From contig NW_003314433.1 in NCBI RefSeq assembly GCF_000143415.4, forward strand, positions 109,375 to 173,374: a DNA stretch of 64,000 bases, in the 5' to 3' direction. This DNA is from Selaginella moellendorffii. Its lineage: Eukaryota > Plantae > Lycopodiophyta. Both the position numbers and the translations under genes were made by a program. The notes under the pieces were generated by a model that had not been told where the DNA came from, ran no database searches, and was given only the letters and a program-made list of their open reading frames with translations. Positions 15,057 to 58,282 of the stretch are shown one piece after another; the stretch's first letter is position 1; the number at the start of each line of letters is the position of its first letter.

Positions 15057-18000
15057 TCATATTTTTTTTCCCTCTAAGATTGTGAGATGAAGAGCAAAAT
15101 ATTTTTCCATGATCATCTCCTGCTTTTCTTCTTTCTCAAATTTAGTTGTCACTAGCTTAAATATCTTTTGTACATCTTCTACTTTGGGATTTGTAGTTAG
15201 TTTGCTTTTGAGAAGAAATGAATCCAAAAAACTTATGAGGCTTCCCTTGATTTCGTCTACTATTGCATTCACAGTCTCTCCAACACCAGCAAAATGTCCT
15301 CCAACTTTAGCCCCAATAAATAATAGAATCAATGTATATTTAAATACTGGAGCAAATTTCTTGAGCCAGTTTGGTGGGAGATCCACTTCAATACCTTCAG
15401 AACTCTGCACTTGATGAGCTTTAAAAGTTCCTTCAAGCTATTCACACAAGTAGTGAAGTTTAACATGTGTTCCCAATATTTTGTTGTAATTTTTCCACCT
15501 ATTATTCTCATCAAGAATATATGGATATTTTGGGCAATCTATCTCCAATTTCAATAATACTTGCAAACACTTTGTATGGATTGCATTCACTTTATCCATG
15601 ATAGACTTTAGTCCATTTTTGAGCTCGTTAAGGATTACTTCAATGTCATCAAGTTTTGTATCCAACTTGTCAAAACGGTTCTCCATTTTATCAAACTTCT
15701 TATCAAAATATCTGAAGATTGCATTGAGTTTTGAGTCTTCAATATTCGGAAACTCAACAACATCTGATGATACTTTGGGAATTGTGACTTCTCCAACCTC
15801 CTCATAGTCCTTCAAAAATTCATAAAGTTCAATAAACTTCTTTACCCCTTCATGTTTTTGCTCGTTAGGCATCAATAGCTTAGCCAAAGCATTCTCATCT
15901 GAGACTTTCAAATCGTTAATCACATCCCAACTCTCTACTTCATGTGAATCATTCCAAGTGTGAGAGTAGTCTAAACCGCTTTCTCTTGCTTCACATTTGA
16001 CTTGTTTTAATGGATAAATAACTGCATCCCATGATTTTGGTTTGCCCACATTATTTAGTATCCTTCTCCACACATAACCAATATTCTTCTTGCAATAGTG
16101 TTGGCATTATCAACTCTTTGGGCAAGTTATGCCAATTCCCATCCCATGTATCATCCCTAGGCAATATCACTCCCATCTCATGGAGCACTCCAAGAATGTA
16201 CTCCACTATTTTGTCTTGGTTCCCACATTGTTGCTTCAACTGATGTTTAACTCTGTGTGTTTCCATTTGACTTTTGAGTTTGCTTGTCTCAGTATGTATG
16301 AAGAGTTGCACCACATCCCTCATAAACCATTGGACATCTAAGATGACAAATTGAGACACAATGTCGTCCTCTTCATGTCCCAAGCCAAAGTAAATTGCAT
16401 CACCAGAATCATGTGGAAATTGCAAGACGAATTTGAGAACATTCTTGGAACTCCTGTGAGGCAAAAGGATTTTGCCAACTTTATCTAGGGGTATGACCTT
16501 CTTGTGACTTGGATCTTGTACCAATTTCCTCTTTGCTTTGAGACATTCCCGTGGTATTTGTTGCTGGGCTGACAGCAGTTCTTCCAAGCAACTCCCCAAC
16601 ATGGTTTTTATCCCCCTTAAATCTTTCACTCGAGTGGCCACCACCTCAAAACAAAGATCTGTCCCAAACTCAAGTACTTGCCCATAGCCTTTGTCAGAGA
16701 TTATTGCAGAAACCACGTCCTTTGGGTCATAGTTGCATTTTGGAGTGAAAAAATTCAAGGCAATCAAGACCTTGGGCTTCCTTTTGGGTGAGGCTGATTG
16801 ATGTGAAGCGATGAACCTCAGCCAGTAAACCAAATTCTGCTTGAAAACGTCACAATTGTCATCCTCCACCTTGCATACGATCAAGAAGAGATCCTTCTCA
16901 CTTCCTCTAAGAAAGTACTGGTGGAAAACATGGAACTCTTCCTGTCCAGCCAGGTCGCAAATGAGTAGCTTTTGTTTGGTGGTTGCATAGACAAGTGGTT
17001 GCAGCTCAATGCCTGCTGTTGAAGCATGCCTTTGGAGACATGATGGAAACCAAGACACTCTGCGGCAGAGGTTGTTTTTTATTGTGGTTTTTCCAACCCC
17101 GCTAGCACCACACAAGAAGAGCTTTGCTGTTGACGGGTTGTCAAAGTCTTTGAATGCACTCTGCTGGAAGATTGCATTCCGCTCTAAAAGACCAGAACAC
17201 CTCTGCTTGAAAGCTTCAGAAGCTTCGGAATCATTGCCTATATCAAGCTCTTCCACGAGGCTTTGGTAGTTTTCCTCCAGGGCAGCCAGAATTTGTCTTT
17301 TCTGTGCATCACTTCCAAGATCAGGAGCCCTGAATCTGCGCACCTTGCATTTTGGATCCCCCAGCAACTGGCAAAGATCTTCCAGCTTTTCAAAATTTGG
17401 CTGAGATATTCTCAAGTCTTCAATGCTGCTTCCCAAAAGGCACCTCCATGGCAGTTCCGAGTCACATATCAAAGATTTCAGATACTTGCACCTGGTGATA
17501 GCTTTCCAAAAGAGCTCCCCATTCGTGATTTTGCACTCCGATATACCCAAATGCTCCAGTTGGCTCTTCTCTATGCCCTCGGCAAACTCCAACGTTAACT
17601 CATCTTCTCCTCCCGCGCTACCCCATATTTCCAAATGGCGCAGCTTACAATGTGGACTTGAGAGAGCTGACCACAGACTGCTGTCCCAGACCATTCCTCC
17701 TCCCTCGTTGGGACAATCAAGGTTGAGCTTGATCAGCTTGCAATTGGGATTTTGTAGCGCTTTGCCCAACCATCCACCACCATCACCTGGATAAAGTCTA
17801 ACGCTGAGTTCCTCCAAGCCACACTTAGCGCTGCTCAGGGCCTCACCCAGGCCCGTTGCATTGCTCAGGTCCTCACTCTGTCTCATTCTTCGGCAATCTA
17901 AAACTGAGAAGCTGGTGCCCTCCTGAAGAGCCTTGCATACCCATGGCAACACTCCAGCATCAGTATCCCGAGATAGGTCTAGTCTTTGCAGTGAACAGTT

Positions 18001-18930
18001 TGGACTAGTGAGTGCCTTGAAGAGTGCTTCACCTGCCTCCTCTGGAAATGATGCCGTCAGTTCTACTAGCTTATTGCAAATGCCATTCTGAAATGCCTGT
18101 TCCCACCCTTCCTTGCCAATGTCCTTATCTAGGATGGCTAACTCTTCCACCTTGCACTCCTGACTTGCCAGATCCCTACTCAATTTCCCAAATCCTTCCA
18201 CTGTCATCCTGTTCGAAGCCAAGGCGAGACGTTTCAAGTTGTTTCCTGGTTTCCTAAGGAGTTGGCTAAGGAGAGTCTCTGGGTTCCCAACCTTGTCCAA
18301 CCCGAGCTCTGTCAAGCAGTCGAGCTGAGCAAAGGCCAACTCAAGCTCCTGAGGTGGTGTGAGGATGTCTTTGCCTTCCCAATAGATACCTAGCCCTTTC
18401 AAGACTTTGAATTCCTCTGTCATCATCAGTAGCTTTGCAAACCTCTGCACCTCAATCTGGCCAATATCTTGTCCCTGCTGAGGAGGAGCAATGCCCTCTG
18501 CCACCCTTTGCATCCGATCACTGGGAATGCCCAACCTACAAGCGACCCTGGCAGCGAAGTGGATGAATCTGATGTCGAGCTGTGGTACCAAAGCGGCCTT
18601 GAGAATGTCAATGTGAGCAGCAGCAGCAGCAGCAGACGAACTGCCATCACCAGGAGCATCTCCCACATCCAGAGCCCTGTCTAAACTGGGTGGATTTGAA
18701 ATGCACCAGTTGAGCACACCAACCAGATCCTCCTCTGTGCCTCCAAAACTCTCGACGGTAGCACTCACCTTATCAACAAACTCGCCTTCGGATAGCTCCA
18801 GCCTCGAGAAAAGCCCACAAGAAAAGCCAATCGCATTGAAGTGCCGCTTGTTGTCCCGCTTCGCTGCGAGAGCCTCCTTGATCTCCTTGACAGAGCCACA
18901 GCTGATCCACACTCGTCGCTCCTCCTCCAT
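15057..18930 (-). pseudogene. LRR-Roc-COR (TORNADO1-like ROCO) copy 1
   Basis: Ribonuclease-inhibitor (RI)-type LRRs, P-loop GASGVGKTT, DLAGQEEF and COR. A ~0.4 kb frameshifting deletion lies at ~16080 and a TAG at 15438-15440. Confidence 0.9.
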
Positions 18931-19350
18931 GGAAGTTTGCCCTGGATCGAAGGGTATTTACAGGTATTCCCAGAGGTATGGTGAGTCCTTTCTTCACTAT
19001 TGAGAGTGGCCCTGTGCCACGTGGCTAGTCCACGTGGAGAGACACGAGTCTTCACCGGTTCACCATGTGACACATATGTACATTTTCCATTCCATATATG
19101 CTATGACGGATCTTGAGCACCATCACACGGTTTCACCTTTCGTTAGATGGTATCGGAGCAATGCCTGGGAGAGCGCAAAGAATACGAAACCGTAGGATCA
19201 GGGCGACACTCGCTAGGGTGAATCGGAGCCTCCGTCTACGTAGACAGAGGCGTGCCCTAATCCAAGCGCTCCAGGCCTTGCAAGAGGCACTGGACGACTA
19301 AGAACCTGGACCTAGACTTGAACGAGTGGTGGGATTGGGTGTCGGCACCC

Positions 19351-20601
19351 ATGGCAGCCACTGTTCCTACAAATCCGCCTCCAAATCCACCACCTATTTC
19401 CCCTCCCATCACAAATCCGACTGTGCCTACAGCGGATATCATTTCAGTGGACGCAAATCCACCAAAATTTGATGGGAGGAACTGGCGCTTCTGGAAGACA
19501 AAATTCGAATCCTATATGGATGAACGAGGCCTCTGGGACATCACCACAGGAACTGAGACACTTCCAGATACAGCTACAGTGGATGAAACTGCGAAGTATC
19601 GCAAGAAGGACCGGAGAGCTTTGGGCAAATTCCATGCAGCGCTGGAGGGGCGAGAATTCCATTGCATTGGACGGTGCAAGAGTGCAAAGGAAGCGTGGGA
19701 GGCCATGAAGCAGACTTACCAGATCCCTTCAACATCCCATCGCATATTTTTACGGAAGCAGCTTCATGCATTGGTGATGGTTGAAGGGGATGATCTCAAG
19801 GATCATCTTGCTGGTGTGAGAACCATCTTAGATGATCTTAAGGATGTAGGTGCAAACATAGAGGATGAAGAAGAAGCAGAGCTGGTGCTCGTCACACTTC
19901 CTCCATCCTTTGATCCTCTCATACGTAGCCTCACTACCACTGGAACTCCTCTAACCCTGAATGGCGTGATCAGTAGCCTCCAGGACGATGATCTGAGACG
20001 AAGAGCAACAACAGGATCAGAGGCCGTTGCATTCTACTCTTCTCTCAGGAAAGAAACAGTGAACAAAGGGAAACAAGGAGCCTCTTCATCCAAGAAGCCC
20101 AAGTGTTCTCATTGCAACAAGAAAGGCCATGACGAAGCTCAATGCTGGGTGAAAAATCCATCTCTCAAGCCTGTAAGGAACAATGCAAAGAAAAAGGTGG
20201 TACACGCCTTCATCTTGTCACGAGCTATGGCTGTGGCAGCACTGTCTGCAGAGTGCATCTACCTGGATTCTGCTGCCACAGACCATATGTTCAACAGTGA
20301 TAAGTACTTTGAAGCCTATGTTCCTACAGCCACAGAGGAGTATGTCATCGTTGGCAATGCCCAGCAGCTTGCTGTGAAAGGAGTTGGAACCATCAAGTTC
20401 ACTTTACCACAAGGAATAGTCGTAAAGATCCACGAGGTTCTTTATATTCCTGGTTTATGTGCTAATTTGTTCTCTGTGGGACAATTTGCTGAGGATGGGT
20501 ATCAGTTCGCCATTACACCTCGCCAATTCCAGCTGATCTCGACCACAGGAGCCATCCTCACAGCGTCCCGGCCTGGACGGCGTGACCTCTACCGCCTTAC
20601 C
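19351..20601 (+). CDS. Outer Copia gag + protease, interrupted by the nested element
   Basis: Motifs PPKFDGRNW, zinc knuckle CSHCNKKGHDEAQC and protease YLDSAATDHM. It rejoins 25352 in frame (YRLT|MLPD) when the insert and one TSD are removed. Confidence 0.9.
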
Positions 20602-23600
20602 TGTGGTATTATGAAACGGTGTTGTGTTATTATTATGACGGTTGATACATGGTTAAATGTATGGGTTTATCGTGACGATCCGTGGCGGCGTCTGGATCGC
20701 TCACGTGGCTGTGTGCTGACGTGGTCTTGTTCACTCCCACACTCCTCCTCAAGGCCAACGTCTAAGGTCAGCCCAAGTGCCTTCGTGAAGACTTCATGTT
20801 TAACACGAGGAAGTGGTTTTGTTAGCACGTCCGCTAGCATGGAGTTTGTCGGGCAGAACTCCAGCTCGATCATTCCTCTCTGGATCTGGAGTTCTTGGTC
20901 AAAGCTATTGCAGACTGGTTGTCACACAATAGCTTGACCACGCCCGTGTTGATTTGTAGATCCTGGAGAAGTCCCTTCAGCCACGCTGCTTCCTTGGTTG
21001 CAGCTGCTGCAGCTATGTACTCAGCCTCGGTACTCGACATCGCTGTAATAGCCTGTCGTTTGCTGCACCAGCTTGCGACATTTCCATTTAGCAGGAAAAC
21101 GTAGCCTGTGGTTGACTTCCTGTTGTCTGGATCCCCGGCCCAATCAGCATCAGAGTAACCAGCCAGCTTGTTGCCGCTCTCGCCTCTGGAGTACTTTAAA
21201 CTTAGCTGGTTAGTCCCTGCCACGTACCTCATAATACGTTTCAAAGCCTGCCAGTGTGCTGTGGAGGGACGGTCCAGGTACTTCGCCACTGTTCCCACAG
21301 CATACGCAAGGTCAGGCCGAGTGGAGATTACCAGGTAGATCAGGCTGCCGACCATAGAGCGATAGACTGCTCTAGATGCTTTCTCCTCCTCGGGAGATTG
21401 ATCAAGGTACTCTCCACTCTCAGCAGATAATTTCGTGCCTGTTTCCATGGGAGTAGCAACCGGATTAACATGAGCAAGGCCATACCTCTGGAGCACGTCG
21501 GAAACATATTTTGCCTGGCTTAGCTCCAGAGTGCCTCGTTCCCTGTTGCGCGTCACCTGGATACCGAGGCAGAAATGCAACTCACCGAGGTCTTTCATGG
21601 CAAATTTAGCGCCAAGGTACGTTTTAAATTTGTGGATCAAACGTAGCTGATTTGCCACGAGAATAGCATCGTCCACATATAGCGCAAGGAACAAATAGCC
21701 CTCAGCGTCAAAATATATGTAGAGGTTACAATCAGCAGCACTGCGCACGAAACCAAGGGAAATTAGAAAAGAATCTATTTTCGTGTACCATTGGTGCTTG
21801 AGTCCGTAGAGAGCTTTGTTAAGCTTGCAAACGAGGTGTTCTTCTCCAGGCTGGATAAAACCAGGAGGCTGAGCCATATACACCTCTTCATCGATGTCGC
21901 CGTTAAGGAACGCAGTACAAACGTCAAGTTGATGGAGCTCGAGATCCAATTCTGCAGCTAAGATTAGTAGCATACGAATGGTTGTGAGTTTCACCACCGG
22001 GCTGTAAGTCTCCGAGTAGTCCAGCCCATGAACTTGAGAAAATCCGCGTGCCACAAATCTCGCCTTGTAGCGCTCAATGCTTCCATCAGCGTTGTACTTT
22101 TTCTTAAACAACCACTTGGATGAGACGAGCTTTCTGCGAGCTGGAAGTTCAACCAGCGACCAAGTGTTGTTTTTCTGGAGAGAATCATACTCCTCCTGCA
22201 TAGCTGCCTGCCAGTGTTCAGCTTCTGGTCCATGTAGAGCCGCTTGGGGACCGAGAGAGGCAGGTGGAGCCGACAGAGCCCAGAAGTAGGCACGCTTTCC
22301 TATAGGCATCGCCTCCTTGGCTTTAAGAGATGGTTTCACGACACGACCCGAGCGTGTCACCACTGCTGTGCCGGCTGGAGGAGGTGGTAGCTTGGGAATG
22401 CTAGGAGGAGTGGTGGCATCTTGATATAACTCGTCGCCAACGAACAGGTCAGCCACAAGCGTGGAAAGATCTGGCTGTTCATTGGTGCTTGAGGATGCAG
22501 CCGCTGTGGCCTGTGGAGTCGTCAGAGGAGGTGTCGAAGGAAGAGAAGTACCGTGATCAGCTCCTCCTGCCAGATCGCCTCCTTCGGGCGCTCCTTCAGC
22601 AACTCCTCCTGGCTCTGCAGCGGCTGGATTGTCTGGTGCTGGGTGGAGATGTGGAACGTCGTCCAAAATCTCAGAAAGATCCACCAGAGATGGTGGAGAA
22701 ACAGGAGGGAGTCTCAGGGTATCTCGATAAAGACGAGCTTCATCAAACACCACATCTCGGCTCACCACCAGTTTCCTGCGCTGGCAGTTATAGAGTCGAT
22801 AGGCTTTTACCTGGGTGTGATAGCCCATGAAGATGCATTTCTCGCTCTTGGGATCCAGCTTCCGCCGCTGAACATCGGGGATGTGGGCGTAGGCTATGCA
22901 ACCAAACACCCTCAAGTGCCCTAACTTGGGGCGCTTCCCAGTCCATACTTGAAACGGCACCTGTCCTGTGGAACGTGTTGGCAGCCGGTTCCGGAGGTAC
23001 ACTGCTGTGTTGAGTGCCTCTCCCCAAAACACCTTGGGCATGCCAGCGTGCTGGAGAAGGCAGCGTACACAGTCCATAAGTGTCCTGTTCAGGCGCTCGG
23101 CGACCCCATTCTGCTGCGAGGTGTGGGCTGCGGTGTACTCGTGGTGGATGCCAGCCTGAGCAAGAAATGCCAGAAACTCCTTGCTCATATACTCACCGCC
23201 GCCATCTGAACGTAGTGTCCGGATGGTACAGCCAGTGGCATTTTCTGCCCAGCTTTTGTAGACCTGGAAGTGATGGTAGACCTCTCCCTTGTGTGCCATG
23301 AGAACAGCCACCGCATAGCGTGAGTAGTCGTCAATGAACGAAACGAAGTACCGCTTGTGACTGAGAGTTGCTTCTGGCACATGGCACACATCCGTGTGTA
23401 CCAGCTGAAGAAATCCTGAGGCGCCATCTTCTGGACTTCTGCGTGGAAAGGGTAGTCTTGGCTGCTTCCCCAGTTGGCACGTCTCACATACTCCCAGTTG
23501 GCTGGCACCGGTGAGGGTAAAGTCATCAGCAAGCTTGTGGCTAGCAAGTAGCTGGATGTCGTGAGAATTGGCATGCCCTAGCCGAGCGTGCCAGAGCTGG

Positions 23601-25346
23601 AGAGAGTTGGCAGCCCAGGAGCTGGGGCGAATTGCAAGCAAATGCCCCTGCTCGTGAGTTGAGAGGATCAACTGAGCATTGAGCTTGTAGAGAGTCTCAG
23701 CTCGTCTACCAAAAGCTACTGGATGGCCAGTCTCGTCAAAGATGGTGCATCCGTCTGCGTTGAAGAGTGTTGAGAAGCCTTGATCTGCTGCTACACCAAC
23801 TGAGAACACTGTCTGTCCTGCTTCTGGTACGTAGTAGACCTGGTTCACGAGCTTCTCAGCTCCACTCTCCAACTTTATGACCGTTCCTTGTCCTTCCACT
23901 GTTAAGGGGCGTTTGTCTCCTACAAAGACTTGCTTCTCCTGCTCCAGTGGCCGGTACTTGTGAAAAGCTCTCTTCAATGGTGTGAGGTGCATCGAGGCTC
24001 CAGAATCCATCCAGAGCACTTCGGCTTCGGACACAGTGGATGAAGATGCAGCGAGCGTCATCATCAACATCGTGTCAGGTTGGCGTGAAGAAGAGCTTCT
24101 TTCAGCGCGAGCTTTCTCTGCGGCTTTCTTGATCCGGCATTCACGCTCCACGTGGCCAGCTTTGCCGCAGTAGTTACATGGGCCCTTGCGTTTTTTATTG
24201 GTTGCAAATCCAGGGCTGGGAGAAGGGCTCTTTTGTCCTCGAACAGGGCCATCTCGTTTCTTCCCACCCGATTGCTTTCCCATGATCAAGGCCTGCTCCA
24301 CCCGAGCAGCCTGAGAGGGCGCCTTTTGTCTCCGCTCGTTCTGCTTTCGTTCTTCCTCGATCAGGTCCGAGTAGAGCGAGTCCAAGTCCTTTCCAGGTAC
24401 AGCCGAGAGCATCGATGCGAAAGGTTGGAGATCAGGGGAGACAGAGCTTAGAAGGAATGCCTTAGCTTGGTCAATGGTGATTGCCGCTTCCGCGTCCTTC
24501 AGCTCGGTGATCATCGCTTTAAACTTTCCAATGTAAGTGGCCATGGTGTCATCAGGTTGCATTCTCATCGTGAAGAACCTTTGTGTTAGCACCACCTTAG
24601 CATTGGCAGCTTTGGCAGCGAAGATTTGTGTAAGGGATGTCCAGTTCTGGTGGGCTGTTTTGGTAAGATCAAGGAGATGAACGAATTCATCCCCAAGACC
24701 TAACCCGATGACAGAGAGCGCTTTTCGATTCTTGGAGTCCCAGTCGAGCCGTTGGGTTACATCCGCAGCAGCCGGACGTTGAGTCGTTCCATCCACTATA
24801 GGCCAGCAGTCCTTGGCCAAAAGGATAAGCTGTACTTTTGTTTTCCAAGTGGAGAAATTCTGTCCCGTGAACTTTTGGAGAAGTTTCTCCCAGCCCCCAG
24901 AGTCCCAAGAATTTCCTGCTGCGTTAGCAGAAGACATTCTATCTATTAATCTAAGAATAGATTAAACAGAGAATTTAGAAAGGACGGCGTGGAGAAGAAT
25001 CGTGAAAAACTCGGCCGCAACAAGGGCACACCATCCGGCAGGCTGGGCAAAGAGCTTGTTGGCGCTTTCGGTCCTGGATCTTCCGCTCCACCCGCGCCAG
25101 CACTGCCAAAGCCCTCGCGCGCTCCTGAGCCAAGGGTTCCTGGCCCCTTTGATTCTTCATCTGCCACTGTCCTCTTGCCATTAGATCGTTCGCTGCTCCG
25201 ATACCATGTGGTATTATGAAACGGTGTTGTGTTATTATTATGACGGTTGATACACGGTTAAATGTATGGGTTTATCGTGACGATCCGTGGCGGCGTCTGG
25301 ATCGCTCACGTGGCTGTGTGCTGACGTGGTCTTGTTCACTCCCACA
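20602..25346 (-). mobile_element. Nested Ty1/Copia LTR retrotransposon, antisense to the outer element
   Basis: 140-bp TG..CA LTRs at 20602-20741 and 25207-25346, with 1 mismatch seen. TSD TTACC at 20597-20601 and 25347-25351. PBS at 25195-25206 on the minus strand; PPT at 20742-20750. Confidence 0.97.
20870..24937 (-). CDS. Nested Copia gag-pol polyprotein, with small deletions in RT and RNase H
   Basis: Motifs CNYCGKAGHVEREC, WMDSGAS, integrase HTD..SD..E, LYVDD and GYSDADWAG. LYGLK-HQW lacks the usual QAPR, and the RNase H end is frameshifted at ~20880. Confidence 0.9.
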   Translation of the reverse strand: MSSANAAGNSWDSGGWEKLLQKFTGQNFSTWKTKVQLILLAKDCWPIVDGTTQRPAAADVTQRLDWDSKNRKALSVIGLGLGDEFVHLLDLTKTAHQNWTSLTQIFAAKAANAKVVLTQRFFTMRMQPDDTMATYIGKFKAMITELKDAEAAITIDQAKAFLLSSVSPDLQPFASMLSAVPGKDLDSLYSDLIEEERKQNERRQKAPSQAARVEQALIMGKQSGGKKRDGPVRGQKSPSPSPGFATNKKRKGPCNYCGKAGHVERECRIKKAAEKARAERSSSSRQPDTMLMMTLAASSSTVSEAEVLWMDSGASMHLTPLKRAFHKYRPLEQEKQVFVGDKRPLTVEGQGTVIKLESGAEKLVNQVYYVPEAGQTVFSVGVAADQGFSTLFNADGCTIFDETGHPVAFGRRAETLYKLNAQLILSTHEQGHLLAIRPSSWAANSLQLWHARLGHANSHDIQLLASHKLADDFTLTGASQLGVCETCQLGKQPRLPFPRRSPEDGASGFLQLVHTDVCHVPEATLSHKRYFVSFIDDYSRYAVAVLMAHKGEVYHHFQVYKSWAENATGCTIRTLRSDGGGEYMSKEFLAFLAQAGIHHEYTAAHTSQQNGVAERLNRTLMDCVRCLLQHAGMPKVFWGEALNTAVYLRNRLPTRSTGQVPFQVWTGKRPKLGHLRVFGCIAYAHIPDVQRRKLDPKSEKCIFMGYHTQVKAYRLYNCQRRKLVVSRDVVFDEARLYRDTLRLPPVSPPSLVDLSEILDDVPHLHPAPDNPAAAEPGGVAEGAPEGGDLAGGADHGTSLPSTPPLTTPQATAAASSSTNEQPDLSTLVADLFVGDELYQDATTPPSIPKLPPPPAGTAVVTRSGRVVKPSLKAKEAMPIGKRAYFWALSAPPASLGPQAALHGPEAEHWQAAMQEEYDSLQKNNTWSLVELPARRKLVSSKWLFKKKYNADGSIERYKARFVARGFSQVHGLDYSETYSPVVKLTTIRMLLILAAELDLELHQLDVCTAFLNGDIDEEVYMAQPPGFIQPGEEHLVCKLNKALYGLKHQWYTKIDSFLISLGFVRSAADCNLYIYFDAEGYLFLALYVDDAILVANQLRLIHKFKTYLGAKFAMKDLGELHFCLGIQVTRNRERGTLELSQAKYVSDVLQRYGLAHVNPVATPMETGTKLSAESGEYLDQSPEEEKASRAVYRSMVGSLIYLVISTRPDLAYAVGTVAKYLDRPSTAHWQALKRIMRYVAGTNQLSLKYSRGESGNKLAGYSDADWAGDPDNRKSTTGYVFLLNGNVASWCSKRQAITAMSSTEAEYIAAAAATKEAAWLKGLLQDLQINTGVVKLLCDNQSAIALTKNSRSREE

Positions 25347-25351
25347 TTACC

Positions 25352-28183
25352 ATGCTGCCAGATCTTGCTGGACGGAGTCTGGGCCTACACGCACAAAAGA
25401 CAACGACCAGTCACTCACTGGAGCTTTGGCACGCACGCCTGGGGCATCCTAGTGCTGATAGAATCAAGCAGCTCACACGCGAGCAGATGGTTGAAGGTCT
25501 AGACCTGGACCCAAGAGCCGTTCTTCCATTTTGCCAGGGCTGTCAGCTAGGAAAATCTACTCGCCAACCTTTCCCCAAGACTGGAGCATCTCGAGCTACA
25601 GAGCTCATGGAACTTGTACACACTGATGTGTGTGGCCCGATGGCCACCACAGCAGTGGGAGGTATCCAATACTTTATCAGTTTCATTGATGACTACAGTC
25701 GTCGCACTATGATCTACCCTATGGCTCGCAAATCCCAATCGTTACACTACTTCCAGACTTTCAAGGATATGGGAGAAACACAAACTGGGAAAATGCTCAA
25801 GCGATTGAGAAGTGATGGTGGAGGCGAATTCACTTCCAATGCTTTCAACCAGCTGTGTGAGCAAGGAGGGATTGTGCGAGAACTTACAACGCGAGAGACT
25901 CCACAACAGAATGGCGTAGCTGAGCGCAAGAATCGCACACTAGTGGAGAGTGCTCGGGCAATGCTACTTTCCAGTGGTTTGCCTCGCAGCTTCTGGTTTC
26001 ACGCTGTCTTGACGGCGAACTATCTCCAGAACCGGCTCCCCACCTCTGCCCTTGCTGACATCACTCCTGAAGAAGCATGGAGTGGCAAGAAACCTACAGT
26101 TACGCATCTGAGAATATTCGGGTGTGAAGCGTGGGCACACATCCCTGATGGAATGCGCAAGAAATTGGATCCCAAGAGCCAGAAGGCTGTGTTTGTGGGC
26201 TACAGCCTCGATCACAAAGCCTATCGTCTCTGGAATCCAATCACGAAGCAGGAGATCCTGAGCAGAGATGTGGTTTTCAACGAGAATTCGTTTCTTCCTT
26301 CTAGTCAAGGTTCTACTTCCAGACCTACCTTGACCGAAGAAAATGACGTTGAAGCGGAACAAGATCAGTTGACTGTCGGCACGATCACTGTGCCGCTTCA
26401 AACAGTCCCTACACAACAACCCATGCCCGCTTCTACTCCAACACCACCAACCCCGCCGCCTCCTCCAGATCCTCTACGCAGATCGATCCGCACAAGGCGG
26501 CCTACTGAGCGTCTCATCGAGACAATGGTCTCCTCTCGTGCAGCTGGGACTCCTACTGTTCCGAGGACCTATGGAGAAGCCATGGCCTCACAGGAAGCGT
26601 CTTACTGGCGTGTAGCAATGGAAGCCGAGATTGCTTCACAGCAAAAGAACGAGACACATGTTCTTGTTCCAACTGTGCCTTCCAATCGCCAGATTATCAA
26701 GAGCATGTGGGTGTATGCTCTGAAGCTTAATCCTGATGGCTCGGTTCGCTACAAGGCGCGATTGGTGGCGAAAGGATGCTCGCAAGTTCCTGGACTTGAC
26801 TACAACGACACCTTTGCTCCAGTGGTTAAGCATTCTACTCTTCGTTCCTTGATTAATTTTGCTGCGGTGGGAGACTTTGATCTGGAACAGATGGATGTGA
26901 CCACGGCGTTTCTTTATGGCGCGCTTGAAGAAGAAATCTATATGGCACAGCCAGAAGGATTTCTAGCCGCTGGAAAAGAGGATCATCTCTGGCTTCTCAA
27001 GAAAGCTGTCTACGGCTTGAAACAAGCACCCAGATCTTGGTACAAACGCTTTGACGATTTTATACTAAGTGTGGGCTTTTCCCGTAGCGAGGCAGACCCG
27101 AATCTTTATATTCAGGTGGAGGGTGAATCATTTGTGATCATCGCTCTTTATGTTGATGATACTCTTGTCATCCATAACCATCGCTTAATGTTTCTCCAGG
27201 TTAAGCCAGATCTTTGCAGCCAATTTGAGATGAAAACTCTTGGCTCGGCTTCCTACTTTCTTGGCATGGAACTTGTGCGTGATCGCTCTCAACGCACTAT
27301 CTATCTTCACCAAGCCAAGTATATAGAAGAGATGCTGGCCAGGTTTTCTATGACGAGCTCTAATCCAGTGGCGACACCAATGGAACTAGGCTGCCAGCTT
27401 TCACGAGCCATGTCTCCTGAGACAGAGGACGACAAGAGAGCCATGGACTCCATCCCTTACAGACAAGCTGTTGGCAGTCTCATGTATCCAGCTGTTTGTA
27501 CGCGCCCAGATATTTCTTTTGCCGTGAGCAAAGTTAGCCAATTCCTGGCTAATCCTGGATCTCAACATTGGGCAGCGGTGAAACGCATCTTCAGGTACCT
27601 TCGAGGTACTACTTACCTTGGATTGTGCTACCAGGGAAAAGCGCTTACCCTCACGGGCTACTGTGATGCTGATTTTGGGGGAGACTGTGACACACGCAAG
27701 TCCACCTCTGGCTATTCATTTTCCCTGGGCAGTGCGACAGTCTCGTGGTGCAGCAGGAAGCAAAGTACAGTGGCAACCTCTAGTACTGAAGCAGAATATT
27801 TGGCAGCCTCACAAGCTACCAAAGAAGGTGTGTGGTTACGCTCACTACTTTCTAACCTTGGTGTGAGTGTGAAGACTCCCACTCGCCTCTTCTGTGACAA
27901 TCAAAGCTGCATTGCGTTAGCGGCCAATCCTCGCTTTCATTCACGCACCAAACACTTTGGGATTCATCATCATTTTGTTCGTGAGAAAGTGGAAGATGGC
28001 ACAATTGAGCTGATCTACTGCGACACGACCACTCAGGTTGCAGATATCTTCACAAAAGCACTACCCCGAGATCGATTTCAAGTCCATCGCGAAGGGCTGG
28101 GACTTTCTCCACTGATGAGCATCACTCGTGATGGCCACAGTGCCAGTGGGAGTGTTGAGAGTGGCCCTGTGCCACGTGGCTAG
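25352..28183 (+). CDS. Outer Copia pol (integrase, RT, RNase H)
   Basis: Motifs LWHARLGH, VHTDVCGP, RLRSDGGGEF, YGLKQAPRSW, LYVDD, YCDADFGG and ADIFTKAL. Confidence 0.93.
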   Translation: MLPDLAGRSLGLHAQKTTTSHSLELWHARLGHPSADRIKQLTREQMVEGLDLDPRAVLPFCQGCQLGKSTRQPFPKTGASRATELMELVHTDVCGPMATTAVGGIQYFISFIDDYSRRTMIYPMARKSQSLHYFQTFKDMGETQTGKMLKRLRSDGGGEFTSNAFNQLCEQGGIVRELTTRETPQQNGVAERKNRTLVESARAMLLSSGLPRSFWFHAVLTANYLQNRLPTSALADITPEEAWSGKKPTVTHLRIFGCEAWAHIPDGMRKKLDPKSQKAVFVGYSLDHKAYRLWNPITKQEILSRDVVFNENSFLPSSQGSTSRPTLTEENDVEAEQDQLTVGTITVPLQTVPTQQPMPASTPTPPTPPPPPDPLRRSIRTRRPTERLIETMVSSRAAGTPTVPRTYGEAMASQEASYWRVAMEAEIASQQKNETHVLVPTVPSNRQIIKSMWVYALKLNPDGSVRYKARLVAKGCSQVPGLDYNDTFAPVVKHSTLRSLINFAAVGDFDLEQMDVTTAFLYGALEEEIYMAQPEGFLAAGKEDHLWLLKKAVYGLKQAPRSWYKRFDDFILSVGFSRSEADPNLYIQVEGESFVIIALYVDDTLVIHNHRLMFLQVKPDLCSQFEMKTLGSASYFLGMELVRDRSQRTIYLHQAKYIEEMLARFSMTSSNPVATPMELGCQLSRAMSPETEDDKRAMDSIPYRQAVGSLMYPAVCTRPDISFAVSKVSQFLANPGSQHWAAVKRIFRYLRGTTYLGLCYQGKALTLTGYCDADFGGDCDTRKSTSGYSFSLGSATVSWCSRKQSTVATSSTEAEYLAASQATKEGVWLRSLLSNLGVSVKTPTRLFCDNQSCIALAANPRFHSRTKHFGIHHHFVREKVEDGTIELIYCDTTTQVADIFTKALPRDRFQVHREGLGLSPLMSITRDGHSASGSVESGPVPRG

Positions 28184-28307
28184 TCCACGTGGAGAGACAC
28201 GAGTCTTCACCGGTTCACCATGTGACACATATGTACATTTTTCATTCCATATATGCTATGACGGATCTTGAGCACCATCACACGGTTTCACCTTTCATTA
28301 GATTCAC

Positions 28308-49088: not shown

Positions 49089-52000
49089 ATGGAGGAGGAG
49101 CGACGAGAGTGGATCATCTGTGATTCTGTCAAGGAGATCAAGGAGGCTCTCGCAGCGAAGCGGGACAACAAGCGGCACTTCAATGCGATTCGGTTTGATT
49201 GTGGGGAGAGGCTGGATGCGCTTGACTCATCCAAAGGTGAGTTTGTTGATGAGGTGAGTGCTACCGTTGAGGGGTTTGGAGGCACAGAGGAGGATCTGAT
49301 TGGTGTGCTCAACTGGTGCATTTCAAATCCACCCTGGTTAGACGGGGCTCTGGATGTGGGAGATGCTCCTGGTGATGGCAGTTCGTCTGCTGCTGCTGCT
49401 GCTGCTCACATTGACATTCTCAAGGCCGCTTTGGTACCACAGCTCGACATCAGATTCATCCACTTCGCTGCCAGGGTCGCTTGTAGGTTGGGCATTCCCA
49501 GTGATCGAATGCAAAGGGTGGCAGAGGGCATTGCTCCTCCTCAGCAGGGACGGGATATTCGCCAGATTGAGGTGCAGAGGTTTGCAAAGCTACTGATGAT
49601 GACAGAGGAATTCAAAGTCTTGAAATTGCTAATATTCAATTGGGAAGGCAAAGACGTCCTCACACCACCTCAGGAGCTTGAGTTGGCCTTTGCTCAGCTC
49701 GACTGCTTGACAGACCTCCAGTTGTGGCATGTTGGGAACCCAGAGACTCTACTTAGCCAACTCCTTAGGAAAGCAGGAAACAACTTGAAACATCTCTGGT
49801 TGGAGAGGAACAGGATGACAGTGGAAGGATTTGGGAAATTGAGTAGGGATCTGGCAAGTCAGGAGTGCAAGGTGGAAGAGTTAGCCATCGTTCTGGATGA
49901 GGACATTGACAAGGAAGGGTGGGAACAGGCATTTCAGAATGGCATTTGCAATAAGCTAATAGAACTGAAGGCACTGTTTCCAGAGGGGGCAGGTGAAGCA
50001 CTCTTCAAGGCACTCACGAGTCCAAACTGTTCACTGCAAAGACTATACCTACTTTGGGATAGTGATCCTGCAGTGTTGCCATGGGTATGCAAGGCTCTTC
50101 AGGAGGGCACCAGCCTGTCAGTTTTAGATTGCCGAAGTGAGGACCTGAGCAATGCAACGGGCCTGGGTGAGGCCCTGAGCAGCGCTAAGTGTGGCTTGGA
50201 GGAACTCATCGTTACACTTTATCCAGGTGATGGTGGTGGATGGTTGGGCAGAGCGCTACAAAATCCCAATTGCAAGCTGATCAAGCTTAAACTTTCTTTT
50301 CGCAACGAGGGAGGAGGAGTGGTCTGTGACAGCAGTCTGTGGTCAGCCCTCTCAAGTCCACATTTTAAGCTGCGCCATTTGGAAATATGGAGTAGTAGAG
50401 AAGATGAGTTAACGTTGGAGTTTGCCGAGGGCATAGAGAAGAGCCAACTGGAGCATTTGGATATATGGAGCTGCAAAATCACGAATGGGGAGCTCTTTTG
50501 GAAAGCTATCACCAGCTGCAAGTATCTGAAAGCTTTGTCATGTGAGTCGGAGCTGCCATGGAGGTGCCTTTTGGGAAGCAGCATTGAAGACTTGAGAATA
50601 TCTCAGCGAAATTTTGAAAACCTGGAAGACCTTTGCCAGTTGCTGGGAGATCCAAAATGCAAGTTGCTCAAATTCAGGGCTCCTTCTCTTAGAAGTGATG
50701 CACAGAAGAGACAAATTCTGGCTGCCCTGGAGGAAAACTACCAAAGCCTCGTGGAAGAGCTTGATATAGGCAATGATTCCGAAGCTTCTGAAGCTTTCAA
50801 GCAGAGGTGTTCTGATCTTTTAGAGCGGAATGCAATCTTCCAGCAGAGTGCATTCAAAGACTTTGACAACCCGTCAACAGCAAAGCTCTTCTTGTGTGGT
50901 GCTAGCAGGGTTGGAAAGACCACAATAAAGAAAAACCTCTGCCGCAGAGTGTCTTGGTTTCCATCATGTCTCCAAGGGCATGCTTCAACAGCAGGCATTG
51001 AGCTGCAACCACTTGTTTATGCGACCACCAAACAAAAGCTGCTCATTTGCGACCTGGCTGGACAGGAAGAGTTCCATGCTTTCCACCAGTACTTTCTCAG
51101 AGGAAGTGAGAAGGATCTCTTCTTGATCGTATGCAAGGTGGAGGATGACAATTGTGACGTTTTCAAGCAGAATTTGGTTTACTGGCTGAGGTTCATCGCT
51201 TCACATCAATCAGCCTCACCCAAAAGAAAGCCCAGGGTCTTGATTGCCTTGAATTTTTTCACTCGAAAATGCAGCTATGACCCAAAGAAGGTGGTTTCTG
51301 CAATAATCTCCGACAAAGACAAAGGCTATGGGCAAGTACTTGAGTTTGGGACAGATCCTTGTTTTAAGGTGGTGGCCACTCAAGTGAAAGATTTAAGGGG
51401 GATAAAAACCATGTTGGGGAGTTGCTTGCACGAACTGCTGTCATCCCAGCAACAAATACCACGGGAATGTCTCGAAGCAAAGAGGAAACTGGTACAAGGT
51501 GCCAGTCAGAAGAAGGTCATACCCCTAGACAAAGTTGGCGAAATCCTCTTGCCTAACAGCAGTTTCAAAAGTGAAGAAGCCTGGAAGAATGTTATTAAAT
51601 TCGTCTTGCAGTTTCTACATGATTGTGGAGATGCAATTTACTTTGGCTTGGGACATGAAGAGGGTGACATTGTGTCTCAATTTGTCATCTTAGATGTCCA
51701 ATGGTTTATGAGGGATGTGGTGCAACTCTTCATACCTACAGGGAAGATCAGCAAATTCAAAAGTCAAATGGAAACACACCAAGTTGAACATCGATTGCAA
51801 GAACAATGTGGGAACCAAGACAAAATAGTGGAGTACATTCTTGGAGTGCTCCATGAGATGGGACTGATATTGCCTTGGGATGAAACATGGGATGGGAATT
51901 GGCATAACTTGCCCAAAAAGTTGAAAATGCCAACACTATTGCAAGAAGAATATTCACCTCCAGAATATTTATCATTGCCATCAGTGCCAATTGACACTCA

Positions 52001-53420
52001 AAAAAACCACAACTACTGGGGCAGGAGGTTTGAATGCAAAGACAAGGACTTGAAATTGTTTCCTGCAAGTATTTTCACAAAGATCCAAATTAAACTTCAC
52101 AAATTAAGCAAGAAAGGTTTTAGGCCTGGGAATGGATGGGTGGCTTTGAAAGAGAACCTTATCAAGACAATTGTGAGAGTTGGGGGAGACACAGACAATT
52201 GGAAAGATAGGCAATGGGTTGATGTCATCATCTATTACCCAAAAGAGGTAAAGAATGCACCAAGGCCAGATTTGGAAAAAGAAGCTGAAGGATGGATGGA
52301 AAAAATTAGAAATTGCATTATTGGGGTATGTATGGAGGATTGCCCATCTTTGGAAATTGAAGAAAATGTGATGAGACGTGGTTATGTATGGAGAAGGATA
52401 CTAAATAAGGGGGACAAACTAGAATTATGGGCTTCAGTTATTTGTCCACTAAAGGAAGTCAAATGTGAAGCAAAAGAAAGAGGTTTAGAATACTCCCACA
52501 CTTGGAATTATTCACATGAAGTAGAGGACTGGGATGTGAATAATGATTTGAAGGTCTCAGATGAGAATGCTTTGGCTAAGCTATTGATGCCCAATGAGCA
52601 AAAACATGAACTGGTGAATAAGTTTGTTGAACTTCATGAACTCTTGAAGGACTATGACGAGGTTGGAGAAGTCACAATTCCCAAAGCATCATCAGATGTT
52701 ATTAAGTTTCCAAACATTGAAGACCCAAAACTTGATGCAATCCTCAGATATATTAAGAAGATGTTTGATAAAATGGAGAACCGTTTTGACAAGTTGGATA
52801 CAAAACTTAATGACATTGAAGTAAGCGTTAACGAGCTCAAGAATGGAATCAAGTTTATCATGGATAAAGTGAATGCAATCCATACAACGTGTTTTCAAGT
52901 ATTATTGAAATTGGAGACAGATTGCCCAAAATATCCATATATTCTTGATGAGAATAATAGGTGGAAAAATTACAGCAAAATATTGGGAACACATGGTAGA
53001 CTTCACTATTTGTGTGAATGGCCTGAAGGAACTTCTAAAGGTCATCAAGTGAAGAGTTCTGAAGGTGTTGAATTGAATATCCCACCAAACTGGCTCGAGA
53101 AATTTGCTCCAGTACTTAAATATACATTGATTCTATTATTTATTGGGGCCAAAGTTGGAGGACATTTTGCTGGTATTGGAGAGATAGTGAATGCAATAGT
53201 GGATGAGATCAAGGGAAGCCTTATAAGTTTTTTGGATTCATGTCTTCTCAAAAGCAAGCTAACTACAAATCCCAAAGCAGAAGATGTGCAAGAGATATTT
53301 AAGCTAGTGACAACTAAATTTGGGAAAGAAGAAAAACAGGAGACAATCATGGAAAAATATTTTGCTCTTCATCCTATAATCTTGGAGGGAAAACAAATAT
53401 GGGTCTGCAAAGGTATTTAG
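49089..53420 (+). CDS. Intact intronless LRR-Roc-COR protein (TORNADO1-like ROCO), 1443 aa from MEEERR
   Basis: Uninterrupted ORF with RI-type LRRs (ALQNPNCKLIKL, ALSSPHFKLRHL), P-loop GASRVGKTT, G3 DLAGQ, COR, a coiled coil and a TRN1-like tail (RLHYLCEW..HQV..WLEKFAP..IWVCKG). The track's TTG start at 48756 is probably not used, because all four copies share the MEEERR start. Confidence 0.9.
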   Translation: MEEERREWIICDSVKEIKEALAAKRDNKRHFNAIRFDCGERLDALDSSKGEFVDEVSATVEGFGGTEEDLIGVLNWCISNPPWLDGALDVGDAPGDGSSSAAAAAAHIDILKAALVPQLDIRFIHFAARVACRLGIPSDRMQRVAEGIAPPQQGRDIRQIEVQRFAKLLMMTEEFKVLKLLIFNWEGKDVLTPPQELELAFAQLDCLTDLQLWHVGNPETLLSQLLRKAGNNLKHLWLERNRMTVEGFGKLSRDLASQECKVEELAIVLDEDIDKEGWEQAFQNGICNKLIELKALFPEGAGEALFKALTSPNCSLQRLYLLWDSDPAVLPWVCKALQEGTSLSVLDCRSEDLSNATGLGEALSSAKCGLEELIVTLYPGDGGGWLGRALQNPNCKLIKLKLSFRNEGGGVVCDSSLWSALSSPHFKLRHLEIWSSREDELTLEFAEGIEKSQLEHLDIWSCKITNGELFWKAITSCKYLKALSCESELPWRCLLGSSIEDLRISQRNFENLEDLCQLLGDPKCKLLKFRAPSLRSDAQKRQILAALEENYQSLVEELDIGNDSEASEAFKQRCSDLLERNAIFQQSAFKDFDNPSTAKLFLCGASRVGKTTIKKNLCRRVSWFPSCLQGHASTAGIELQPLVYATTKQKLLICDLAGQEEFHAFHQYFLRGSEKDLFLIVCKVEDDNCDVFKQNLVYWLRFIASHQSASPKRKPRVLIALNFFTRKCSYDPKKVVSAIISDKDKGYGQVLEFGTDPCFKVVATQVKDLRGIKTMLGSCLHELLSSQQQIPRECLEAKRKLVQGASQKKVIPLDKVGEILLPNSSFKSEEAWKNVIKFVLQFLHDCGDAIYFGLGHEEGDIVSQFVILDVQWFMRDVVQLFIPTGKISKFKSQMETHQVEHRLQEQCGNQDKIVEYILGVLHEMGLILPWDETWDGNWHNLPKKLKMPTLLQEEYSPPEYLSLPSVPIDTQKNHNYWGRRFECKDKDLKLFPASIFTKIQIKLHKLSKKGFRPGNGWVALKENLIKTIVRVGGDTDNWKDRQWVDVIIYYPKEVKNAPRPDLEKEAEGWMEKIRNCIIGVCMEDCPSLEIEENVMRRGYVWRRILNKGDKLELWASVICPLKEVKCEAKERGLEYSHTWNYSHEVEDWDVNNDLKVSDENALAKLLMPNEQKHELVNKFVELHELLKDYDEVGEVTIPKASSDVIKFPNIEDPKLDAILRYIKKMFDKMENRFDKLDTKLNDIEVSVNELKNGIKFIMDKVNAIHTTCFQVLLKLETDCPKYPYILDENNRWKNYSKILGTHGRLHYLCEWPEGTSKGHQVKSSEGVELNIPPNWLEKFAPVLKYTLILLFIGAKVGGHFAGIGEIVNAIVDEIKGSLISFLDSCLLKSKLTTNPKAEDVQEIFKLVTTKFGKEEKQETIMEKYFALHPIILEGKQIWVCKGI

Positions 53421-57185: not shown

Positions 57186-57250
57186 GGTGACTGGAGTCTG
57201 GCAATTACCTCAAGATGGTCGAAAACTCTCACTTTGCAATGTCGGACAAG
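57186..57250 (+). pseudogene. Isolated PHO1 exon fused to the ROCO copy 4 leader
   Basis: Reads YLKMVENSHFAMSDK|GT, the same fusion as upstream of copy 1. Confidence 0.75.
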
Positions 57251-57319
57251 GTGTGAAGAAAGGACTAACCATACCTCTGGGAATACCTGTAAATACCCTT
57301 CGATCCAGGGCAAACTTCC

Positions 57320-58282
57320 ATGGAGGAGGAGCGACGAGTGTGGATCCCCTGTTTGTCTGTCAAGGAGATCAAGGAGGCTCTCGCAGCGAAGCAGGACAAC
57401 AAGCGGCACTTCAATGCGATTGTGTTTCATTGTGGGAAGATCTGGAGGCTGGAGGCGCTTGACACATCCAAAGGTGAGTTTGTTGATGAGGTGAGTGCTA
57501 CCGTTGAGGGGTTTGGAGGCACAGAGGAGGATCTGATTGGTGTGCTCAACTGGTGCATTTCAAATCCACCCAGTTTAGACGGGGCTCTGGATGTGGGAGA
57601 TGCTCCTGGTGATGGCAGTTCGTCTGCTGCTGCTGCTGCTGCTCACATTGACATTCTCAAGACCGCTTTGGTACCACAGCTCGACATCAGATTCATCCAG
57701 TTCGCTGCCAGGGTCGCTTGTAGGTTGGGCATTCCCAGTGATCGAATGCAAAGGGTGGCAGAGGGCATTGCTCCTCCTCAGCAGGGACAGGATATTTGGC
57801 AGATTGAGGTGCAGAGGTTTGCAAAGCTTCTCATGACAGAGGAATTCAAAGTCTTGAAAGTGCTACGTTTCAATTGGCAAGGAGGCAAAGACATCCTCAC
57901 ACCACCTCAGGAGCTTGAGTTGGCCTTTGCTCAGCTCGACTGCTTGACAGAGCTTTGGTTGTACAGGGTTGGGAACCCAGAGACTCTCCTTAGCCAACTC
58001 CTTAGGAAACCAGGAAACAACTTGAAACGTCTCCAATTGCTGGGGAACAGGATGACAGTGGAAGGATTTGGGAAATTGAGTAGGGATCTGGCAAGTCAGG
58101 AGTGCAGGGTGGAAGAGTTAGTCATCGAAGATAACCACATTGGCAAGGAAGGGTGGGAACAGGCATTTCAGAGTGGCATTTGCATTAAGCTAGTAAAACT
58201 GGTGGCAACGTTTCGAGAGGAGGCAGGTGAAGCACTCTTCAAGGCACTCACTTGTTCAAACTGTTCGCTGCAAAGACTATAC
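57320..58282 (+). pseudogene. LRR-Roc-COR copy 4, interrupted in the LRR region by a DNA transposon
   Basis: Homology to copy 3 stops abruptly after CAAAGACTATAC (58282). Confidence 0.9.

Follow-up and report, generated by a model that had tools for sequence, protein, structure and literature searches.

We describe a cluster of four LRR-Roc-COR (ROCO) gene copies in a 64,000-nucleotide stretch of the Selaginella moellendorffii genome (contig NW_003314433.1, positions 109,375 to 173,374; the whole stretch is called the window below). The window holds four copies of one large gene, which encodes a leucine-rich repeat (LRR) domain, a Roc domain, a COR domain and a C-terminal domain, together with Copia-type retrotransposons. 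Codon comparisons combined with a structure model indicate very strong diversifying selection on the LRR strand residues predicted to face the solvent and on the loop just after each strand. By analogy with receptor families that evolve in this way, we think it probable that the gene family is an intracellular immune-receptor repertoire built not on nucleotide-binding LRR (NLR) proteins but on a tandem cluster of ROCO genes resembling TORNADO1 (TRN1).

The start codons of the four copies (MEEERR...) lie at 18930 and 42061 on the minus strand and at 49089 and 57320 on the plus strand. Their far ends, mapped by blastn of copy 3 against the window, are at ~15040 for copy 1, 37869 for copy 2 (with a detached tail at 30201-30024), 53420 for copy 3, and 58282 for copy 4; indels were listed from a MAFFT alignment. 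The copies are as follows.

49089..53420, plus strand: copy 3, intact LRR-Roc-COR-C-terminal domain gene in a single 1443-codon frame (open reading frame [ORF], start codon, Pfam Roc match)
15040..18930, minus strand: copy 1, pseudogene with a 425-bp frameshifting deletion in COR (blastn against copy 3, indel list)
37869..42061, minus strand: copy 2, pseudogene with a 1-bp frameshifting deletion near 38600 and its coding sequence interrupted at 37869 by a long terminal repeat (LTR) element
30024..30201, minus strand: 3' end of copy 2, displaced beyond the LTR insertion (94% match to 53299-53476 of copy 3; junction sequences)
57320..58282, plus strand: copy 4, 5' fragment of the LRR domain, ~320 codons (homology stops at 58282)

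The copy 3 protein is 91% identical to the S. moellendorffii proteins P0001 and P0002; in the homologues from this species a terminal intron of ~50 bp, inferred from reference gene L001, is spliced out after ...IWVCK. The deletion in copy 1 has its junction at 16080 (equivalent to 51955-52378 in copy 3), and the ORF stops at 16051. In copy 2 the final ~40 codons are split from the remainder by a 7.7-kb insertion. The breakpoint of copy 4 at 58282 is also present in the reference copies L007 and L002b. An earlier note, made from the letters of this stretch, had recognized four copies, quoted several sets of variant LRR motifs, counted one intact and three disrupted copies, and proposed birth-and-death evolution. 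All the quoted motif sets are present in the window translations. For copies 1/2/3/4 in turn they read LKGLGIYWE / LKGLEFNWL / LKLLIFNWE / LKVLRFNWQ, LTELGLDKV / LTELCLRNV / LTDLQLWHV / LTELWLYRV, LKRLALASN / LKRLQLLGN / LKHLWLERN / LKRLQLLGN, and AIGFSC / TIGFYC / AIRFDC / AIVFHC. The count, too, is correct: copy 3 is intact, and copies 1, 2, and 4 have suffered, respectively, a deletion, a frameshift plus LTR insertion, and a truncation. Birth-and-death evolution is likewise apparent in a cluster with damage of all these kinds; copies arise and die fast through deletion, frameshift, truncation, and LTR insertion.

Diversifying selection on the LRR strands

The proteins closest to the window copies are eight S. 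moellendorffii entries, 82-91% identical and named "ROCO family protein," "protein TORNADO 1," or "uncharacterized." The loci of seven of them were taken from assembly GCA_000143415.2 (P0007 has no contig on record), and the family has at least 12 copies. For the selection tests we aligned 12 sequences, made up of all four copies from the window, the genes at seven reference loci, and the L002b fragment, and projected them on the codons of copy 3. Every codon lying no more than two positions from an indel was masked, as were codons 321-573 of L007.

Amino-acid variability along this alignment is concentrated in short periodic blocks, and Roc and the LRR helices are nearly invariant. We defined a strand class as the DSSP strands plus the two residues following each, 113 of the 560 residues of the N-terminal domain; the class was drawn from the structure model only and includes the buried, invariant leucines. 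Among the window copies alone, over codons 1-320, 44% of pairwise codon comparisons in the strand class are nonsynonymous and 1.6% synonymous, against 7.2% and 1.7%, respectively, outside it. Differences that change the amino acid involve two or more nucleotides in 54% of cases in the strands and in 21% elsewhere. The near-identity of LRR helices and Roc across copies, and the radical, often multi-nucleotide nature of the strand changes, had both been claimed in the earlier note, and the per-codon variability and these counts uphold them.

The pooled Nei-Gojobori ratio of nonsynonymous to synonymous changes (dN/dS) is 1.46 for the LRR domain (residues 1-560), 1.0 for the linker and Roc, 0.47 for COR, and 0.43 for the C-terminal domain. 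When the N-terminal domain is divided by structure, the same method (NG86) gives the following values, with bootstrap 95% confidence intervals in brackets.

Strands plus two residues: dN/dS 2.67 (1.83-4.25); 47% of differing codons with two or more nucleotide changes
Remainder of the N-terminal domain: dN/dS 1.01 (0.69-1.59); 13% of differing codons with two or more nucleotide changes
COR plus C-terminal domain: dN/dS 0.45 (0.36-0.57)

None of 2000 bootstraps brought the strand class to 1 or below. COR and the C-terminal domain, judged by these ratios, are under purifying selection.

Site models lead to the same picture. We fitted M0, M1a, M2a, M7, M8, and M8a with our own implementation of the GY94 F3x4 codon model, whose M0 reproduces the log-likelihood (lnL) of the IQ-TREE GY model exactly (-5104.008). 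The fits for residues 1-560, where ω is the model estimate of dN/dS, are listed below.

M0: lnL -5104.01, ω = 1.99
M1a: lnL -4977.87
M2a: lnL -4765.05; 2ΔlnL 425.6 against M1a; 16% of sites at ω = 14.3
M7: lnL -4985.24
M8a: lnL -4977.87
M8: lnL -4757.78; 2ΔlnL 455 against M7 and 440 against M8a

Tests of this kind can be inflated by recombination, but the comparison of M1a with M2a remains significant in each of four sub-partitions fitted on its own tree (2ΔlnL 186, 84, 63, and 69). It is far weaker in Roc-COR (2ΔlnL 45, ω2 = 4.7) and almost absent in the C-terminal domain (2ΔlnL 6.8). Fifty-one codons have a posterior above 0.95 for ω > 1, and 33 of them fall in the strand class (odds ratio 9.8, P = 2.5e-13, Fisher's exact test). 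The selected sites are spaced i, i+2, as in L-x-x-L-x*-L-x*-x* (asterisks mark selected positions), and in some repeats the third position is selected too; the interleaved leucine codons are invariant. The diversifying selection that the earlier note had placed at exposed β-strand positions is thus borne out, with a strand-class dN/dS of 2.67 and ω ≈ 14 at ~16% of sites. The lower confidence bound of 1.83 lies above 1, and the variation is far from evenly spread, 33 of the 51 selected sites lying in 113 of 560 residues. Taken together, the aligned sequences describe a conserved LRR framework, Roc, COR, and C-terminal domain, with alleles and paralogues differing mainly at the putative contact positions.

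Could the family merely be decaying, its variability reflecting relaxed constraint in mostly dead duplicates? Only one window copy in four is intact, several reference copies are damaged as well (L006 by an internal stop, L007 by a large deletion), and dN/dS is close to 1 in Roc and in the part of the N-terminal domain outside the strands. However, neutral decay cannot yield ω well above 1, and the strand class stands at 2.67 with a lower bound of 1.83; M2a and M8 beat the neutral models by 2ΔlnL of more than 420. The variation is also periodic (i, i+2) around invariant leucine codons, purifying selection acts on COR and the C-terminal domain (0.45), and copy 3 as well as five reference copies are intact. 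We regard this explanation as largely refuted and very improbable.

An artefact must also be weighed: sequences could be misaligned near indels, paralogues could have undergone gene conversion, or tandem units that are nearly identical could have been assembled into chimeras. The N-terminal domain does contain many in-frame indels, mosaicism between the copies is clear, and copy 3 is a perfect chimera of L001 and L002 relative to the reference (see below). Against this, masking had removed all codons up to two positions from an indel, and the motifs quoted in the earlier note are ungapped with identical sequence on both sides. The four partitions are each significant on their own trees, the tree-free pairwise counts agree, and conversion or chimerism reshuffles variants but cannot create a nonsynonymous excess. 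There is accordingly little chance that the signal is of technical origin.

Beyond this cluster, two pairs of near-identical proteins, one from Adiantum nelumboides (P0010/P0160) and one from Selaginella subfamily C (P0011/P0161), have differences that are about threefold denser on the N-terminal side of Roc than on its C-terminal side, and those of the fern pair recur at intervals of roughly 27 residues. These sequence patterns hint that diversification of the LRR surface reaches ferns and another Selaginella subfamily and is not confined to this cluster.

Sequence exchange, allelic divergence, and the cluster unit

Compared with the reference assembly, copy 3 is a clean chimera of two genes. 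Its nucleotides 1-1700, with ~1 kb upstream, are ~100% identical to L001 (GL377608.1), and the part from nucleotide ~2000 onward matches L002 (GL377737.1) at 99-100% identity; the surrounding 11 kb are collinear with L002. In window coordinates, 48000-50800 is of L001 type and 51100-53420 of L002 type, the switch lying in the conserved linker/Roc region. Either an entire LRR module has recently been exchanged, or one of the assemblies is chimeric at this point. Relative to the reference, copy 3 joins the LRR module of one paralogue to the body of another, and trees of the LRR, Roc-COR, and C-terminal regions disagree accordingly. At the level of single strands, most have seven to nine different variants among about 10 sequences, and these variants are distributed in mosaic fashion, so that copy 2, for example, matches L005 in one strand and the copy 4 group in the next. 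On this sequence evidence, single strand cassettes are exchanged between paralogues, and so, barring an assembly chimera, are whole LRR modules.

Synonymous divergence (pS) is very uneven along the gene. It stands at ~0.03-0.045 for the LRR framework and Roc, at 0.07 for COR, and at 0.14 for the C-terminal domain; the hypervariable strands have 0.085. This unevenness suggests that conversion homogenizes the 5' half, with old or diverse sequence persisting at the contact codons.

Divergence of the same kind is seen between apparent alleles. L004 and L005 (GL377608.1 and GL377709.1) have collinear 10-kb flanks that are 98.5-98.6% identical, while the gene itself (10001-14360) is only 93.4% identical, with a strand-class pN/pS of 2.4 and the excess divergence focused in the LRR strands. 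The figure reported for haplotype divergence in the S. moellendorffii genome is ~98.5%. The two loci have the appearance of a haplotype (allelic) pair, and allelic hyperdivergence at the same strand sites argues for selection still acting within the species.

Other features of the window include transposons and parts of a larger repeated unit. The transposon features are given here.

30202..37868: non-autonomous LTR retrotransposon inside copy 2 (LTRs, target-site duplication, junction sequences)
19318..28183: pair of Copia-type retrotransposon bodies, lying between copy 1 and the detached tail of copy 2 (integrase and reverse transcriptase motifs, by reading of translations)

The element in copy 2 has LTRs of ~1.8 kb each (30202-32008 and 36068-37868) that are 98.3% identical, TG...CA termini, and a 5-bp target-site duplication (CTTAA); it lacks a long internal ORF and is a young insertion. 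Both LTRs consist largely of 23-bp tandem repeats, which produce long spurious ORFs in several frames. The Copia bodies carry a 1355-aa gag-pol ORF (20870-24937, minus strand) and a 943-aa integrase-reverse transcriptase-RNase H ORF (25352-28183, plus strand).

AT-rich tandem repeats with a unit of ~470 bp (GC content 26-33%) occupy 53308-54560 and 14100-15170; they begin inside the ROCO coding sequence, in its final ~110 bp, and continue 3' of copies 3 and 1. At L001-L007 the ROCO genes belong to a repeated unit of ~20 kb that also contains an EIN3-like/SPX chimeric gene and a DUF4110/kelch gene. Inverted partial copies of the unit are found in the window at 1-13100, 28300-29900, and 42100-48700, and recognizable remnants include an ORF with an EIN3 DNA-binding domain (2208-3074) and SPX fragments (45507-46025 and 28714-29241). 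Collinearity with L002 stops at 58943, and the following sequence to 64000 contains two long minus-strand ORFs (59369-60601 and 61217-62707), neither of which matches a Pfam family. This segment may be an unclassified insertion that separates copy 4 from any leftover fragments.

Domain architecture and relationship to TRN1

The domains of copy 3, all on the plus strand, are located as follows.

49089..50768: N-terminal LRR domain, aa 1-560 (AlphaFold2, Foldseek, site models)
50883..51221: Roc GTPase domain (Pfam PF08477; alignment to Rab10, LRRK2 Roc, and the prokaryotic Roco 4wnr)
51459..51869: putative COR-A domain (Pfam PF16095, 24.8-32.1 bits, under the cutoff of 35.3)
52389..53417: C-terminal domain, aa 1101-1443 (selection, conservation, hhalign; AlphaFold2 pLDDT 64.7)

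Pfam detects no significant LRR in the copy proteins (the best matches being LRR_1 and LRR_4 at E 0.03-0.08), and we therefore relied on structure prediction for this domain. The AlphaFold2 model of residues 1-600 (pLDDT 83.8, pTM 0.80) is a solenoid of alternating strands and helices with 17 β strands and a 138-residue helical insert (aa 40-177) between strands 2 and 3. Its best Foldseek matches in the PDB are the LRRs of NLRP9, NLRP14, and other NLRP proteins, and ribonuclease inhibitor, with E-values from 8.5e-12 to 1e-9. The solenoid and these matches put an LRR N-terminal to Roc, as in the LRR-ROCO subclass.

Roc itself is recognized in copies 1-3 by PF08477 at 40.5-41.8 bits (40.5 in copy 3) against a cutoff of 27. 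It has a canonical P-loop, GASRVGKT, and switch II, DLAGQ, and the NKxD of the G4 motif is replaced by N-F-F-T. At this site (51300-51330 in copy 3), members of the lycophyte/fern clade described below have N-[FY]-[FH]-x, and those of the TRN1 clade T-H-x-D; the nucleotide specificity of plant ROCO proteins may, to judge from these motifs, be unusual. The COR-A match is below its cutoff; it stands at the expected place C-terminal to Roc, and the reference proteins, 82-91% identical, carry precomputed assignments to this family. COR-B was not detected in the Pfam scan of the full proteins. That scan returned only Roc, Ras, COR-A, and MMR_HSR1, with no NB-ARC, NACHT, TIR, CC, RPW8, or kinase domain, and the N-terminal sequence has no evident signal peptide.

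The C-terminal domain comprises a long helix, a small sheet with invariant Cys, Glu, and His residues (RLHxLCE...H.V.G), a hydrophobic helical hairpin, and a terminal W-x-C. It is conserved in fern, liverwort, and other Selaginella ROCO proteins, and its profile aligns with the C terminus of Ipomoea TRN1 over 334 columns (hhalign probability 99.5%, E 3.2e-22). A word-indexed profile search found no stand-alone homologues. Subthreshold Pfam matches of coiled-coil type (FlaC_arch, Baculo_PEP_C, and BLOC1_2) were dismissed, and weak matches to membrane proteins (MscS, claudin, TARP) were not significant and were not used.

Since the automatic NCBI name "protein TORNADO 1" is attached to P0001, P0002, and P0161, and since the full architecture is common to TRN1, copy 3 might be taken for a conserved developmental gene, orthologous in Selaginella to TRN1, and the remaining copies for its dead duplicates. 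The similarity scores speak against this. Ipomoea TRN1 matches copy 3 only weakly (E = 1.3e-5, 25% identity), but in phmmer it scores 209-368 bits against proteins of moss, fern (Ceratopteris), Marchantia (MPTK1_5g17320), and Chara, and ~100 bits against the best Selaginella ROCO in the scored set. In a maximum-likelihood tree of Roc-COR (82 sequences, quick search, midpoint-rooted only), the family falls in a lycophyte/fern clade (SH-aLRT 99), and Ipomoea TRN1 joins moss, Marchantia, and Chara members in a separate TRN1 clade (SH-aLRT 98). The existence of at least 12 copies, with ω > 1, is a further point against orthology, which we regard as extremely unlikely.

A HMMER scan of 1.84 billion representatives recovered a single cluster at 50% identity for the family, with the next matches, at 31-39% identity, being other Selaginella ROCO subfamilies and Adiantum proteins, followed by liverwort, moss, and Chara. 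The tree does not support the origin proposed in the earlier note, which had called the family TRN1-derived, and tree and phmmer scores both argue against copy 3 being a single TRN1 orthologue. These comparisons instead place the family as a paralogous TRN1-like lineage that has the full architecture, including the C-terminal domain, and that is neither a TRN1 orthologue nor a recent derivative.

Proposed receptor function and its alternatives

Rapidly evolving immune-receptor families are recognized by a set of evolutionary features, and the present family has them: ω > 1 on the predicted ligand-binding surface, a tandem cluster, birth-and-death turnover, divergent alleles, and exchange between paralogues. 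An ω well above 1 that is restricted to the LRR surface, in genes that are clustered, keep their switch and output conserved, have hyperdivergent alleles, exchange modules, and rapidly become pseudogenes, is the signature of receptors in an arms race. Each paralogue would then be a cytosolic receptor, a location we propose because no signal peptide is evident at the N terminus, whose LRR binds a different, fast-changing ligand. Binding would release or alter the nucleotide state of Roc-COR, and this switch would in turn relay to and activate the conserved C-terminal output domain. The path from LRR through Roc-COR to the C-terminal domain would be analogous to that from LRR through NB-ARC to CC or TIR in NLRs, with a GTPase replacing the STAND ATPase. 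Pathogen-derived ligands seem the most likely, because S. moellendorffii is reported to have only about two canonical NLRs (PMC3782705).

A close precedent, whose analogy also counts in favour of an immune role, is the LRR-ROCO family of the brown algae Ectocarpus and Saccharina (Zambounis et al. 2012; PMC11378527). There, too, the order is LRR-Roc-COR, the genes are multi-copy with many pseudogenes, and tests of PAML type detect positive selection at a few concave LRR positions; an immune-receptor role has been proposed on the strength of these selected sites, from evolution alone (PMC11378527). The two systems generate diversity differently. In brown algae each 23- to 24-aa LRR is a separate 72-bp exon, and diversity arises through exon shuffling and alternative splicing, whereas in Selaginella the whole LRR domain, with 26- to 29-aa repeats of ribonuclease inhibitor type, lies in one exon and diversifies through point substitutions, often of several nucleotides, and exchange between paralogues. 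The Selaginella family also has a TRN1-type C-terminal domain, unlike the brown-algal proteins, which are not close to green-lineage ROCO proteins (PMC11378527).

With plant NLR (NB-ARC-LRR) clusters the family has in common hypervariable exposed xxLxLxx residues, tandem arrangement, divergent alleles, paralogue exchange, transposon-rich surroundings, and frequent pseudogenes. It differs in that NB-ARC, TIR, CC, and RPW8 domains were not detected in it, that its switch is a Roc-COR small GTPase, and that its LRR is N-terminal rather than C-terminal. Angiosperm TORNADO1 (TRN1/LOPPED1) has the same four-part architecture and a homologous C-terminal domain, including RLHxLCE...H.V and the terminal W-I-C. 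However, it is a conserved developmental gene of a different Roc-COR clade, 25% identical, and the Ipomoea protein has the non-canonical GKN and WNLAGQ where the Selaginella family, which is tandemly expanded and hypervariable, keeps GKT and DxxGQ.

Other likenesses are confined to single domains. Ribonuclease inhibitor and the LRRs of animal NLRP proteins have the same alternation of strand and helix in repeats of ~27-29 residues (TM-score up to 0.64, normalized by target length), but they are only 14-20% identical in sequence, have unrelated flanking domains, and contrast with the Selaginella LRR in its 138-residue insert. The Roc domain aligns to those of LRRK2 and the prokaryotic Roco 4wnr, and prokaryotic Roco and MFHAS1 (MASL1) likewise carry an LRR before Roc-COR. 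Differences from this group of ROCO GTPases are that the Selaginella family lacks a kinase, that its G4 is without the Lys and Asp of NKxD, and that it has a plant-specific C-terminal domain.

Several points weigh against an immune function or against the strength of the signal behind it. Recombination between paralogues violates the single-tree assumption of the site models, a problem mitigated but not removed by the partitions and the tree-free NG86 counts, and the posteriors are naive empirical Bayes values from 12 sequences. The value of dN/dS near 1 outside the strands and the weak signal in Roc-COR could partly reflect relaxed constraint in pseudogenized copies. The placement of the selected sites on the concave face is predicted from standard LRR geometry. 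With a degenerate guanine-specificity motif, N-F-F-T, in G4, the behaviour of Roc as a GTP switch is not assured. The C-terminal domain has no recognizable fold (in Foldseek searches of PDB and BFVD, no match had an E-value under 0.1) and no known effector homology, nor did PADLOC return a match. Finally, the sole characterized protein with this C-terminal domain, TRN1, is developmental.

Some of the same facts could be read in another way, in which the selection is real and the receptors serve outside immunity, recognizing fast-evolving endogenous partners such as factors that govern self/non-self or gametic compatibility, selfish genetic elements, products of transposons, or a co-evolving system of developmental ligands linked to TRN1 signalling. 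It is in keeping with this that TRN1, the only studied protein with the same architecture and C-terminal domain, acts in development (Cnops et al. 2006, as cited in PMC11378527), that homology to known defence effectors is lacking, and that the cluster sits in transposon-rich DNA. But a tandem cluster with allelic hyperdivergence, many pseudogenes, and ω ≈ 14 on the LRR surface is the classic signature of pathogen-driven evolution; moreover, the family lies outside the TRN1 clade, and its host is poor in NLRs. We judge a non-immune role unlikely, while giving it real weight, and retain the immune-receptor interpretation as the probable one.

A broader proposal goes further: lycophytes, and probably ferns, would use an expanded LRR-Roc-COR family as a main intracellular immune repertoire in place of NLRs, its members being GTPase-switch receptors with an output domain of TRN1 type. 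In that case the plant-specific ROCO architecture, of which seed plants keep only the developmental gene TRN1, would be what is left of a second, ancient class of intracellular receptors, convergent with the ROCO proteins of brown algae. We put this forward tentatively, as a possibility that we do not favour at present.

Intracellular immunity in plants is generally attributed almost wholly to NLRs. Recent work on ROCO proteins credits plants with "one or two ROCO genes," whose function is poorly understood (PMC11378527), and in the literature searched we found no published description of the expansion or hypervariability of the present genes, although the proteins are in public databases. Here a land-plant ROCO family with at least 12 copies bears the evolutionary signature of resistance genes on its LRR, joined to a different switch and a conserved output domain. 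The 51 candidate contact residues and the apparent natural swap of an LRR module in copy 3, relative to L001 and L002, are ready material for work on specificity. If the family does function in immunity, it would represent a second, NLR-independent receptor architecture in land plants, provide a testable hypothesis for how NLR-poor lineages detect pathogens, and offer a new view of the roles of the TRN1 domains.

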